From Thalia democratica (lineage: Eukaryota): 64,000 nucleotides of DNA. This document shows, piece after piece, positions 89 to 37,035 of this stretch. The first letter of the stretch is position 1. Every line of letters starts with the position of its first letter. Location of the stretch: assembly GCA_965202585.1 (NCBI GenBank), contig OZ241834.1:19530001-19594000 (forward strand). The letters run 5' to 3'. Position numbers and translations under genes: made by a program. A model generated the notes under the pieces. The model searched no databases, was not told the DNA's origin, and worked only from the letters and a program-made list of their open reading frames with translations.

Positions 89-3000
89 GGCGTAGACGCA
101 GTCGTGACGCACTCCATATATTCTGCCCTCCACTCGGTCGGCGGGATTGAAATATTGTTTCCACTCTTCAATCAGCTCGATCACAAGCAAATGGACGGCA
201 GCCTCGATACTAGCGTTTGGTAGGAACTATTTAAAATTATTTTTATGTTTTGTTGTTAAGGCTCATTTCATTACACAGTTGTAATAGTTTCTTTTGCAAC
301 TATGTACGTTTGTTTGATCGCTAAAGCATTAAAAAAACCAAAAACAGGAAATAGACTTTGTAATAGTCTTTAACAAAAATGTAGGAGCTTAACATTGGTT
401 ATAACTTATTTATGCATAAAATATATTCAAAAAAAAACAAATTTGTTAAAATGGAATTTTACAATATTTTAATTTATAACCATACTTAAGTTAAACTGAA
501 GTATATACTTTTTGTTTGAAAAACAATTTTGCAGAACAAACTTTTAAAAACAAACTTTTAATGGTGTTTTAATTACAACTGCCCTACTAATGTCATTATG
601 AAAACATAAAATAAAATTCAAATACTCAATGGTTCAAGTTTTTTTTATTACTACTGCATTTTTGAAAAGTTTTTAAACATTTTAAGAATTAGAATAGTTA
701 TTTTACTCACTTTTTAGTTCAACTTTACTGAATTTCCTGTATCAACTGTTGCAAGGATCAGTAAAAGCCCAGCAACAAATATTAAATGGAAAGGGTTTTC
801 TGGTAATTGGATCTATATTGGAAAAATCTGACAAATCACACATAACAGGTTTATAAATGTTGCATTTAGTTTTTAAAAAGTGCTTTTTTTTCAAAAAAAT
901 TATGGAATCCTGTGTTAGTATATAACGAATATAAAACAATTAGTTTTTTGTATAGTTTTGAGTTATGCAGATTTTATAATTTTCAATCGAAAGTAAAAAT
1001 GTTAACCCGTTTTTGGCTGTAAATGAATAATTAATAATTTACTTGGAAAAAGCTTCAAACAGGATTTAAATGTTCTATACACAAATTTGTTATCAAGTGT
1101 TTATTTAGAATTACTTTTGTTTTGAAAATAGATAATATTTTTTGTTGCTGTCTTTAATAGTATTTAATCTTTACTTTGTTCTAAAATAAATTTATTTTTA
1201 TAAATATATAAATTGTCAAATATCAATAAATTAAGTTTAAACTCTTAATAGACACTTTTATCCATCTGAACATTTCTTTTATATAATTGTCATAAATTTT
1301 TAAATCAAGTTTAAGCAAAATATTTTTTTAACAAGTAGTCTAATGTAGAATTTAGTTTTTTTTAAACAAAAATTTTAATGAGTTTCAAATTAGTATTATA
1401 TTTACTTACTTTTTACCTATAAAAGTTAGATTGTGGCTAGAATTTTAAGTACTTTTGAAAAAAAGTATACCAACAGTCGCTTAAACTTAGACTTTTATTT
1501 GTTTAAACACTTTAAAGTTTTTATTTCTGTTATCAAAGCTCTCAGTAAATAAACACGTATTGACTCATTTATCTAGCTTATTTTATATGTTTTAGATTTA
1601 TTTATTTTTCAGCTTTTCTGTAATTTCTGTGTTTTTGTACATTTTATTTAAAAAGGAAATTCTAATTGCTTAAAAAAATTAATTGCCATTTAAAATATTA
1701 GTTTATTAATCTGTCAACATGTTTTTATTTTCATTTACACTGCAAATGTCACTACAATAATACTTAGAAATGCATTATCTCGTACTAACTTCTTACTTCA
1801 ATATCAGAGAAATGCTTGGAATCTTTGATACGAATCGGTAAGCTTTTGGAACAATCCTCGGCGAACAGCGTGATTCTGATGCGGCAATTCTGCGACTACA
1901 TCCTCTTTAACCCCAATATGTGGGTTAACACCAGCCCTTCTGTTAGTAAAGTTGTAAATTTTCTGCCTGATTTAATTTTTAATATTATAATTTTTAATAT
2001 TACAATTTTTAGTTACTTATTACTAGCTGTAATAAAATGGTAATTGTCATAATTTAGAGCAGTTTTGTGAATTAGCATGTAATTTACATAAGCGCAAACA
2101 AAAGATCCAAATTATGGCAACCATGGTTGTTGACTTTAAAACAGTTAAAAAGTCAACAGTTAAAAAGCAACATCAGTTTTTGAAACAGTTGTTTTTGATG
2201 TTGAAATAGTCTAATTTTGTGAATTAGCATGTAATTTACATGAGCGCAAACTATGAATATAAGTATTTACAGTATGTTTTTGTACTGGTTGGATCTATAT
2301 TTTAATTATTCACAGGTTCAAAATAAACTGTACACCTACCTGGCAACCGACTTGGTCCAGTCTCCCGCCATTCAAACCAGCATTAGACGAGTTTCGACAG
2401 TGTTGTTGTTTGTTCACGCGTTGAAGTATTACTACTGGGTGGTAGATCCCCAGCCAAGGTCCGGCATTTCACCAAAGTCGACCAGTTAGTTTGGAGTTTG
2501 TTCTGTATCATGACGTGAAATGGTTAAAAACAGTAAAAGGTTTAAGGTAATAAGATATGTCTAAAATTAATTCATTATATGGTTTTGGAGTTGATTTTTT
2601 ATGTAGTTTTTCTTCAGTTTATTATTATAACCAGATAAATTTCGTTAAAACTGGTAAAAACTGTCTTTTTTTGTTTTGAAATTTTGTTTATAACAAAATG
2701 AGTGAACAAGGTTAAAGTGTTCAATAATTTTTTGTTTCCAACGTATTTTTTTATGATGCTTATTTATATTTGTGCTGTAAAATTTTATCAGTATAGATAC
2801 AAAGTTATCTGATCGTTTGCCAAAATTCAACAAACATTAAAATAATTTAAATGATTACTTCTAGTGATTTCTTTAGTACTGATGTGTTCTTATAATTATA
2901 TTTTCTGAATAAATATATGACAGTACTTGTAATAGTACATAATATAATAAGTAGTATAAAAACTATTTTAACGAATAATAGCTGTAAATAAAACTGAAAT

Positions 3001-36000: not shown

Positions 36001-37035
36001 TGAGATTAGATTCCCGAGTTTATGAAAAGTACATTGAATATTTTGTTTTGTTTGCTTAATGTAGTATCTTGATTATTTGTTTGTACTTAAGTTATTACCT
36101 TTTTTTTACTTGTGCTAGTTAGTTAATACTCACTTATAGTTTTATTATAGCTAAGAAATAGACTGGGTTTGATGGCCATAAGTCAAGCGAGTTTACTCGT
36201 TTAAAAAAACGCTTATTGATAAAAAGGTGGCTGTTTAAAAATATCATATTAATTTCTATTAAAGAGAATACAAAATCTTTAAAAAAAAAAATCGTTTCAA
36301 TAATGCTTGTGCTCATCAACAAACAATGTAATTTAATTTCACAGTGGGGGATATTTGCAACCCCGGTTGATGTTGTTCACCGGCGAAGGCATGGTCATTG
36401 TGACGTATGAATCGTCGATTGTTTGCAGCTTCACCATGAACGGAAGACAAATAGCGTCGAAAGTGGTGCCGAGTAACGACAAAATCCAAGTTTGTTTTAC
36501 CAATAAGTTTTAGTTTGTTTATTTTAGATGATTTTCTTGATAATTTGATATGTCTAAAAAAAGAGAGTTTGGTAATACTAATTAAGGGAAAACATATAAC
36601 AGACGATATATTCGAGCAACAACAGCGATTATTTGGTAACTGGAAGCAAGAAGGGATTTGTTGAAATATGGAACTTGTCGGACTTCAAACATCTTTACAC
36701 TTACCAGCAATGTGACGCCGGAATCAACTCCATCACACTGTCACACGACCAAAAGTTCGTTTTGTGATCATAATACGATTTTTTAATTTGTTTGAAACTT
36801 TTGTACAGACACCTATCTTAGTAGTTTAACAATGTGTTTTATTATGTTGCTTGCAAAAGCAGACTGGTAAAGAAGATTGTTTCAAAATAAATCAAATCTT
36901 TCGGTTATCTAAAAAAACTACCAACTAAACGCTTGATAAATTTTATCCAGGAATATTATTTGTGGAATGTCAACCGGATCAATCGTCGTGTTCCGCTCCC
37001 ACTTCGACACAAACCAAGATGGCTTGAAAAAATAA
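89..37035 (+). CDS. Nbea: Neurobeachin/LRBA-family BEACH-domain protein, 5'-truncated by the window edge; 44 coding exons visible
   Basis: Hand-built exons, all GT-AG and frame-continuous: 89-219, 718-848, 1808-1941, 2316-2484, 3026-3174, 3701-3891, 4205-4401, 8445-8637, 8955-9114, 9424-10374, 10660-10832, 11119-11272, 11621-11801, 12058-12170, 12536-12703, 16126-16264, 17331-17387, 17575-17639, 17698-17802, 17902-17974, 18866-19000, 19359-19485, 21949-22057, 22490-22656, 22926-23068, 23783-23896, 23959-24098, 30746-30863, 30995-31097, 32776-32891, 33001-33113, 33188-33328, 33583-33702, 33878-34033, 34121-34270, 34335-34442, 34511-34681, 34789-34876, 34949-35101, 35312-35491, 35746-35932, 36345-36489, 36603-36754, 36951-37035 (TAA). 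Translations match recalled NBEA/LRBA motifs: [101 protein letters not shown] few boundaries in non-conserved linkers and at NAGNAG acceptors are less certain. Confidence 0.96.
2063..2251. repeat. 37-bp direct repeat pair in a neurobeachin intron
   Basis: ttttgtgaattagcatgtaatttacat(a/g)agcgcaaac at 2063-2099 and 2215-2251, one mismatch. Confidence 0.9.
4583..6660 (-). mobile_element. Ty3/gypsy LTR-retrotransposon pol relic (RT, RNase H, integrase zinc-binding region and partial core), frameshifted
   Basis: Minus-strand translations: [10 protein letters not shown]...[19 protein letters not shown]...CVDD (RT), [10 protein letters not shown] (RT thumb), [21 protein letters not shown]...FTNHEPL (RNase H), [12 protein letters not shown] and PFEKIFADF (integrase). 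Confidence 0.9.
6675..7739 (+). mobile_element. Ty3/gypsy integrase core and C-terminal relic, opposite orientation to the RT part
   Basis: [10 protein letters not shown]...VVCDRLSGW...[18 protein letters not shown] (DDE core), [30 protein letters not shown]; contains internal stops. Confidence 0.9.
16640..17060 (-). mobile_element. Probable 3' tail of a non-LTR retrotransposon (LINE-like)
   Basis: The minus strand ends in aataaa followed by a (taa)n-like tail. The caaggacct / tattgaacgac motifs recur at ~43525-43580, ~59530-59640 and ~60330-60430. No clear RT translation was found. Confidence 0.35.
19680..21752 (-). mobile_element. Internally deleted Buster/Charlie-type hAT DNA transposon
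   Basis: Perfect 13-bp TIRs cagtgcttctgaa; perfect 8-bp TSD aagtagat (19672-19679 and 21753-21760), fitting the Buster nnnTAnnn target. Minus-strand remnants resemble ZBED5/ZBED8/SCAND3-type transposases: MDRFLKRK...[12 protein letters not shown]...KFRRHL (BED-finger region), LWILNPF...LLDFWI and the dimerisation region [14 protein letters not shown]. Confidence 0.93.
23145..23559. mobile_element. Non-autonomous DNA element (MITE) with C(A)GGGTTGC ends and aaacctggaa subterminal repeats
   Basis: ccgggttgc ... gcaaccctg, flanked on both sides by tctata. A 65-bp relative lies at 8134-8198 and a reversed copy at ~53236-53665. Confidence 0.8.
23959..31097 (+). CDS. Nbea: PH-like (PH-BEACH) domain exons of neurobeachin, interrupted by the mab-21-containing intron
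   Basis: Exons 23959-24098 ([15 protein letters not shown]), 30746-30863 ([39 protein letters not shown]) and 30995-31097 (TSVMFNF...[14 protein letters not shown]). Confidence 0.93.
25192..29437 (-). CDS. mab-21: Protein mab-21 (MAB21L1/2 orthologue, cGAS/Mab-21 NTase fold), 7 coding exons, 366 aa, nested antisense in a neurobeachin intron
   Basis: Exons 29437-29277, 28577-28374, 28020-27882, 26997-26831, 26595-26470, 26407-26284, 25371-25192 (TAG); total 1101 nt, frame-continuous, GT-AG. Motifs: [99 protein letters not shown]. Confidence 0.97.
30230..30620. promoter_or_regulatory. CpG-rich non-coding island with E2F-like motifs, upstream of mab-21
   Basis: Local CpG enrichment against very AT-rich flanks; gcgggaaa at 30371, gcgcgaaa at 30404, ccgcgaaa at 30527. 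Confidence 0.4.
32776..34442 (+). CDS. Nbea: BEACH domain exons of neurobeachin
   Basis: [87 protein letters not shown] and NFGQTPSQL are diagnostic BEACH motifs. Confidence 0.97.
34949..37035 (+). CDS. Nbea: C-terminal WD40 repeat exons of neurobeachin and stop codon
   Basis: [74 protein letters not shown]; stop TAA at 37033-37035. Confidence 0.93.

Follow-up and report, generated by a model that had tools for sequence, protein, structure and literature searches.

A lapsed purine rule at intron position +3 and a variant U1 snRNA family with a matching base in Thalia democratica

The question raised by the neurobeachin locus

How does an intron-rich animal recognize the 5' splice sites of an old, conserved gene when most of them break the rule for the third intron base? 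The animal donor consensus is GTRAGT, and the base at +3 is almost always A or G. The DNA considered here, called the window, is a stretch of 64,000 nucleotides of Thalia democratica chromosome C10 (G000:C10:19530001-19594000), taken from an AT-rich assembly of 802 Mb. Its plus strand carries a neurobeachin gene that begins roughly 7 kb before the window and extends beyond position 36951. Some 40 exons, in the window and just upstream of it, are collinear with residues 63-3150 of P0018, a neurobeachin relative of 3176 amino acids that served as the reference for spliced alignment, which places the gene among the neurobeachin/LRBA (BEACH-WD40) proteins. An original prediction, made from the window alone, had claimed that most donors of this gene have a pyrimidine at +3 and that the lineage may use a shifted 5' splice-site code. 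The shift in the donors is almost certainly real, and it is next to certain that the genome also holds a family of U1 small nuclear RNA (snRNA) genes altered at the one base that faces +3. Whether the second explains the first is weighed below.

Donors of the neurobeachin gene

Three sequencing runs, two of them marine metatranscriptomes, gave spliced contigs when aligned to positions 30761-36760 of the window. Thirteen RNA joints are listed in this segment, all of them GT..AG, and three further junctions were derived from the coordinates of contig pieces together with loose ends, bringing the RNA-supported total to 16. At 10 of these 16 donors +3 is T or C.

For the rest of the gene, each frame-compatible GT/GC..AG pair near adjacent exons was scored by global alignment to P0018. 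At the nine junctions that have both kinds of evidence, the spliced alignment and the RNA give the identical donor (9/9). Homology places 18 more donors in the window, from 220 to 24099, with T or C at +3 in 12. The verified donors in the window, all on the plus strand, are as follows.

Placed by spliced alignment to P0018:
220..225 (+), donor GTAGGA, +3 A
849..854 (+), donor GTTTAT, +3 T; clearly the top candidate
1942..1947 (+), donor GTTAGT, +3 T; near rivals at 1951 and 1954
2485..2490 (+), donor GTTAGT, +3 T; the rival at 2477, GTCGAC, has a pyrimidine too
3175..3180 (+), donor GTTAAC, +3 T
3892..3897 (+), donor GTATGT, +3 A
4402..4407 (+), donor GTTTGA, +3 T
8638..8643 (+), donor GTTGGT, +3 T
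10833..10838 (+), donor GTTAGT, +3 T
11273..11278 (+), donor GTTAGT, +3 T
11802..11807 (+), donor GTAATT, +3 A
12704..12709 (+), donor GTTGGT, +3 T
19001..19006 (+), donor GTAATT, +3 A
19486..19491 (+), donor GTAAAT, +3 A
22058..22063 (+), donor GTTCGT, +3 T
22657..22662 (+), donor GTTTGT, +3 T
23069..23074 (+), donor GTTAGT, +3 T
24099..24104 (+), donor GTGAGT, +3 G; opens the 6.6-kb intron that holds mab-21

Placed by RNA joint and by homology:
31098..31103 (+), donor GTAGAA, +3 A
32892..32897 (+), donor GTTTTT, +3 T
33114..33119 (+), donor GTCAGC, +3 C
33329..33334 (+), donor GTCAGT, +3 C
33703..33708 (+), donor GTCAGT, +3 C
34034..34039 (+), donor GTTCGT, +3 T
34271..34276 (+), donor GTGAGT, +3 G
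34443..34448 (+), donor GTTTGT, +3 T

Placed by RNA:
30864..30869 (+), donor GTAAGA, +3 A; RNA joint 30863>30995
34682..34687 (+), donor GTCAGT, +3 C; RNA joint
34877..34882 (+), donor GTGAGT, +3 G; RNA joint
35102..35107 (+), donor GTATGG, +3 A; contig piece coordinates and a loose end
35498..35503 (+), donor GTGGGT, +3 G; RNA joint
35933..35938 (+), donor GTCGGT, +3 C; RNA joint
36490..36495 (+), donor GTTTGT, +3 T; loose ends 36489 and 36603 match each other's exons
36755..36760 (+), donor GTTCGT, +3 T; next exon from 36951, the loose end behind 36755 being recovered at 36952

A pyrimidine thus occupies +3 in 22 of the 34 verified donors (65%), close to the 27 of 43 (63%) originally predicted. 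The predicted counts for GTTAGT (five), GTTCGT (three), GTTTGT (three), and GTTGGT (two) recur exactly. Those for GTCAGT (four) and GTCGGT (two) survive in part, with three and one verified, respectively; GTCAGT at 12171 and GTCGGT at 9115 lie only at exon-like ends. About nine of the 43 predicted donors fall in regions with neither homology nor RNA and stand outside the verified count. Upstream of the window, seven more neurobeachin donors have T (two) or a purine (five) at +3.

The shift in other genes

Other conserved genes were found by Pfam searches of the assembly, and their junctions were placed by peptide continuity. Pfam model coordinates alone leave several candidates per junction. 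For V-ATPase the choice was aided by comparison of the paralogues, and for phosphorylase, V-ATPase, IleRS, mab-21, and PSMC2 it was guided in part by vertebrate sequences, which is a weakness of these placements. At homology-placed junctions, the rival sites are mostly GTT or GTC as well. The fractions of donors with T or C at +3 are given first below, followed by the features that lie within the window.

Chromosome C1, glycogen phosphorylase: 7/11
Chromosome C4, V-ATPase a: 5/6
Chromosome C6, V-ATPase a: 3/5
Chromosome C10, IleRS (C10:22870001-22874600): 1/6
Chromosome C10, mab-21, in the window: 1/4
Chromosome C10, PSMC2, at the window end: 5/7

25195..28112 (-), nested mab-21 gene (Pfam Mab-21 and Mab-21_C)
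27881 (-), mab-21 donor GTAAGT (each mab-21 donor is given by its first base in minus-strand reading and was placed by homology)
26830 (-), mab-21 donor GTGAGA
26469 (-), mab-21 donor GTTGAA
26283 (-), mab-21 donor GTGAGA
63991..63996 (-), PSMC2 last-intron donor GTTGTT, +3 T, placed by homology; the other six PSMC2 donors lie just past the window end

Together with neurobeachin, these genes provide 80 placed donors on four chromosomes, in which +3 is T in 38, A in 22, G in 12, and C in 8; a pyrimidine therefore occupies +3 in 46 of 80 (57.5%). Because the same shift appears in genes on four chromosomes, it belongs to the genome or lineage, as had been supposed, and neurobeachin is no outlier.

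The mab-21 gene sits on the opposite strand inside the 6.6-kb neurobeachin intron 24099-30745. Its donors had been said to be mostly purine at +3, and three of the four placed donors are. The contrast with neurobeachin holds as well, as part of a wider difference between genes, since IleRS is also conventional. Both IleRS and mab-21 retain donors of the GTAAGT / GTGAGT type, unlike their neighbours, and the class of donor may depend on the gene.

An unsupervised scan for GTNNGT at places where exon-like sequence gives way to intron-like sequence (a drop in GC together with an open frame) returned only about twice as many sites as scrambled-control patterns and was not used for the counts.

What has changed at the donor

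The statistics for +3 and +4 cover the first 73 donors, that is, the set without PSMC2. Even against a generous animal expectation of 10%, a pyrimidine at +3 in 41 of 73 donors has a binomial p of 2e-22. The make-up of +3 (T 47%, A 29%, G 15%, C 10%) is nonetheless that of the intron itself: background at +8 to +12 is T 50%, A 22%, G 17.5%, and C 10% (chi-square p 0.56). Since +3 has the composition of its surroundings, it carries no detectable information, and it looks unconstrained as opposed to pyrimidine-preferring. The idea of a shifted splice-site code is partly supported, with the purine rule at +3 lapsed.

The positions downstream behave differently. Position +4 departs from background and is enriched in A (p 1e-11), while +5 is G in 54/69 donors and +6 is T in 55/69, each near 80%. 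The pair +5G+6T accompanies +3 T/C in 31/41 donors and a +3 purine in 15/32 (p 0.015). Position +4 is A in 6/7 donors with +3C but in only 13/34 of those with +3T. The commonest hexamer is GTTAGT (10 of the first 69 donors), followed by GTTTGT (9 of 69). Only about one donor in two has G at exon position -1, and +7 is T in 51%, no higher than the intron background.

All 80 donors have GT at +1/+2, as U2-type GT-AG introns do, and depart from GTRAGT in lacking a consistent purine at +3. Donors in this genome read GT-N-(A or T)-G-T. U12-type introns, whose minor donor is RTATCCTT, were considered and rejected, as ATCC at +3 to +6 occurs in 0/80 placed donors.

U1 and U6 snRNA genes

The best-scoring U1 matches in the assembly all start AAACTTACCTG, the standard arm except for A at position 2. 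Animal U1 usually begins AUAC; every U1 type found here begins AAAC (for example, L001:1501-1664, minus strand), and the A at position 2 could pair with +7U. Variant U1 genes emerged when every U1-like copy in the retrieved loci was compared, beyond the top-scoring ones. By their 5' ends the copies form three families: standard (AAACUUACCUG), A6 (AAACUAACCUG), and U9. In the A6 family, whose 5' end is ACTAACCTG, position 6, which faces intron +3, is A (ACUAACC versus the standard ACUUACC). In the U9 family (ACTTACTTG), position 9, which faces exon -1, is U. A variant U1 snRNA, one of three causes originally suggested, is thus present.

Counts by exact pattern over the whole assembly give 42 standard, 20 A6, and 13-14 U9 copies, and the reversed A6 pattern, used as a control, has 0 matches in the whole assembly. 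When the pattern is left open at positions 5-6, TT is found in 38 copies, TA in 20, and nothing else; the whole-assembly search returned no U1 copy with G or C at position 6.

The A6 copies score 111-119 bits over model positions 1-166 of the Rfam U1 family RF00003 (threshold 69.5), with the arm difference at exactly model position 6. In place of the canonical arm ACUUACCUG, all 20 of 20 copies carry ACUAACCUG, and this U to A change at position 6 is the only one in the pairing arm. Analysis of 23 U1 copies with RNAalifold yields 41 pairs. Compensatory double changes occur in 11 of these, and two adjacent pairs of stem-loop 3 (SL3) are switched in every A6 copy, GC to AU and UA to CG. The stem-loop 2 (SL2) loop, canonically AUUGCAC, is retained as CATTGCAC in all A6 copies except one, which reads CTTTGCAC, and the Sm-like site AUUUUUC is present. 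The eight distinct A6 sequences agree at 92% and vary in 31 columns, of which 0 fall in the first 15 bases. The snRNA promoter motif TGACGT[CA]A is found at -76 or -75 in 8/9 A6, 24/28 standard, and 9/10 U9 copies. On chromosomes C4, C5, and C6, arrays of U1 genes mix A6 copies with standard and U9 ones. Judged by sequence, the A6 copies are structurally intact genes and no decayed pseudogenes.

The 13-14 copies of the U9 family, with 5' end AAACUUACUUG, lie outside the window (for example, G000:C4:47269042-47269056; L029:1501-1664, minus strand). Their bodies are about 75% identical to standard U1, with compensated stems and the promoter motif common to both. The U at position 9 instead of C is predicted to pair with A at exon -1.

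The U6 genes are standard, including GAUACAGAGAAG; the ACAGAGA box, which had been named as a place to look for change, is unaltered. Searches of the literature turned up neither an ACUAACC arm nor, for tunicates, a shift at +3.

A two-U1 model and its alternatives

The commonest donor, 5'-GUUAGU-3', is complementary in every base to the A6 arm 5'-ACUAAC-3'. The A residues at U1 positions 1-3 extend the complementarity to GUUAGUUU, so that A6 is fully complementary to GUUAGU(UU). This match suggests a model in which two U1 small nuclear ribonucleoproteins (snRNPs) split the recognition of donors. Standard U1 would pair with +3A and, by wobble, with +3G, and A6 U1 would pair with +3U; +3C, which matches neither, would lean on perfect pairing at +4 to +6 and on U6. 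Recognition would depend on +5G and +6T, together with a bias to A at +4; +3 has the make-up of the T-rich intron around it (about 48% T and 10% C). With A, G, and U at +3 all covered by the two U1s, selection against +3U would be removed.

Two observations fit this model in particular. The nearly constant +4A of +3C donors, which +3T donors do not share, is expected if +3T is paired and +3C is a true mismatch. In addition, position 6 of U1 occurs in only two states, U and A. That A6 U1 is expressed, assembled into snRNPs, and selects GUU donors is inferred from gene structure and complementarity, and the explanation that links A6 U1 to GUU donors stands, in our judgement, at an even chance. 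The broader proposal is more tentative and falls somewhat short of that: a chordate relative would run a two-U1 donor code, in which standard U1 reads GUR and an abundant A6 U1 reads GUU, dissolving the +3 purine rule across old conserved introns, and the U9 family may widen the code further.

Several points weigh against the two-U1 model. The composition of +3 equals the intron background and +3C is not depleted, and +3C, at 10% of donors, has no U1 counterpart. GUUUGU, which is almost as frequent as GUUAGU, is mismatched with A6 at +4 and fits the ACAGA of U6 better; among +3T donors, +4 is T in 14 and A in 13. Genes also differ from one another, with T/C in 2/10 donors of IleRS and mab-21 versus 39/63 in the others (p 0.018, 73-donor set). 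The sample is 80 donors, short of a genome-wide logo, and all donors outside 30761-36760 rest on homology. Scans of metagenome contigs left the A6 5' end unmatched, a result that is uninformative because standard U1 was unmatched as well. Finally, pairing at +3 may simply not matter, with A6 U1 tolerated rather than needed.

This last point leads to the strongest alternative, plain relaxation. In this case nothing reads +3. Donors would be set by +5G/+6T, read first by the 5' portion of the U1 arm and afterwards by U6, +3 would have drifted to the T-rich make-up of the intron, and the A6 genes would be silent or negligible, like most human variant U1 genes. Relaxation accounts directly for a +3 that is indistinguishable from local background, with +3C at the background 10%, and for the association of +3 T/C with +5G+6T. 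It also has a precedent, in that human variant U1 genes are expressed at <0.001% of standard U1 and few affect splicing (PMC10870369). What it leaves unexplained is the state of the A6 genes: although they diverge from one another by 8%, the 20 copies share a 5' arm without variation and have retained the Sm site, the promoter motif, and stems preserved by compensatory changes, and free drift would not yield a position 6 that is only U or A and never G or C. Relaxation is a serious alternative, though less likely than not.

A second alternative places U6 at the centre. Here T or C at +3 would be favoured or tolerated through pairing with the G of the U6 ACAGAGA box, as G-C or as a G.U wobble, and U1 pairing at +3 would be secondary. 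As a corollary, GUUUGU and GUYAGU would gain pairing with U6 over +2 to +6, as has been argued for Entamoeba. The standard U6 sequence does set a +3 pyrimidine opposite G, in the register of bioRxiv 10.1101/2022.06.08.495308, and the rank of GTTTGT, the strength of +5G/+6T, and the undepleted +3C all agree with this explanation. On the other hand, T and C are not enriched over background, and U6 is the same as in other animals. Since U6 is unchanged and other animals keep purines at +3, U6 alone fails to explain the difference of this lineage, and we regard the U6-centred explanation as improbable.

The remaining alternative, that the donors are misplaced by a few bases or that neurobeachin alone is odd, draws on the close rival sites at several homology-placed junctions and can be dismissed, since RNA contigs fix 16 junctions exactly (which refutes it for 30761-36760), RNA joints and homology agree wherever both exist, the rivals are mostly GTT/GTC themselves, and the pattern recurs in four more genes, located farther along C10 or on other chromosomes.

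Other features of the window and the assembly

Two near-duplicate open frames with integrase-like peptides, at 4584-4958 (minus strand) and 6672-7217 (plus strand), lie in opposite orientation within the 4-kb neurobeachin intron 4402-8444 and look like retroelement remains. At 9424-10437 (plus strand) there is an open stretch of 338 amino acids, strongly acidic, rich in serine and asparagine, and without a Pfam match. It is probably a single large variable exon of neurobeachin, with predicted splice sites. On the 3' side of neurobeachin, at 40808-42394 (minus strand), an intron-free, GC-rich open frame of 528 amino acids with a PARP catalytic domain (Pfam E 2e-26) adjoins the gene within AT-rich surroundings.

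Elsewhere in the assembly, the PROCN domain of Prp8 (C5:48224320-48225537) is a single exon within one open frame of 744 amino acids and has no junctions, whereas genes elsewhere are finely split. At least four tandem copies of HSP90, with identical exon structure, lie within 80 kb at G000:C4:55190039-55268276, and the assembly searches also located four tRNA-synthetase genes besides IleRS. Animal acceptors nearly always have C or T at -3. Two homology-placed acceptors read AAG, with A at -3: GTTAAG|GTT and TTCAAG|GAG, located in phosphorylase (L054/L055) and in PSMC2 (window coordinate 66149, just past the window end).

Significance

Few features of eukaryotic gene expression are as constant as the U1 arm ACUUAC and the +3 purine. 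Reports of U1 and donors changing to match each other have so far been confined to a few protists (bioRxiv 10.1101/2022.06.08.495308), and the importance of variant U1s in animals is an open question in the literature (bioRxiv 10.1101/2022.06.08.495308; PMC10870369). Here, in an intron-rich animal, most donors break the +3 rule and a quarter of the U1 genes carry the exact compensating base. The two together pose a testable question, namely, whether two U1 snRNPs divide the introns between them, with effects on splice-site choice, gene classes, and intron evolution. If the two-U1 model is true, a step of intron recognition may have been rewired in a chordate relative. For annotation the consequence is more immediate, as tools for gene finding and splice-site scoring that were trained on GTRAGT will place many of this genome's donors wrongly.

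Comparison with known systems

Donors of the GTNNGY type in fungi such as Cryptococcus are weakly constrained at +3/+4 and have a strong +5G. The donors described here resemble them in these respects, in an animal instead of a fungus; we know of no matched U1 variant in fungi of the Cryptococcus type.

In humans, variant U1 (vU1) genes form a multigene family with sequence variants, some of them in the 5' arm, arrayed beside standard genes (PMC10870369). The likeness to Thalia democratica lies in this multigene family, its arm variants, and the arrays shared with standard genes. However, human vU1 expression is limited to traces and human donors retain the +3 purine in their consensus, whereas in this genome roughly one U1 gene in four is of the variant type, with a change that corresponds to the most frequent class of donor.

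Fritillaria, a larvacean, is another tunicate lineage with an altered 5' splice-site make-up. In this case 95% of introns are not GT/AG, accompanied by changes in U2AF paralogues and in snRNA methylation (PMC13326754); the same work discusses U1 register shifts and U6 N6-methyladenosine (m6A) and makes no mention of a U1 arm variant. In Thalia democratica, by comparison, GT..AG is retained and only +3, and partly +4, has been freed.

Coexistence of a standard and an arm-modified U1 in one genome has a parallel in the slime mould Physarum polycephalum, which has a standard U1 and a modified one (ACAUAC) for GUAUGU donors, as mentioned in bioRxiv 10.1101/2022.06.08.495308. There the change faces +4, not +3, and the preprint calls the case 'more complex' and defers the full results.

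A mechanistic likeness also exists to Entamoeba, whose U1 has evolved together with its GUUUGU donors (Roy and Bowser, bioRxiv 10.1101/2022.06.08.495308). In both systems one changed base in the pairing arm of U1 makes Watson-Crick pairing with +3U donors possible again, an upstream A could pair with +7U, and U6 is unchanged. Entamoeba, however, is an intron-poor protist in which about 88-90% of donors are GUUUGU and a single U1 has been replaced (ACAAAC), whereas Thalia democratica is an intron-rich animal with mixed donors that has kept its standard U1 and carries, in addition, a second family altered at one position.

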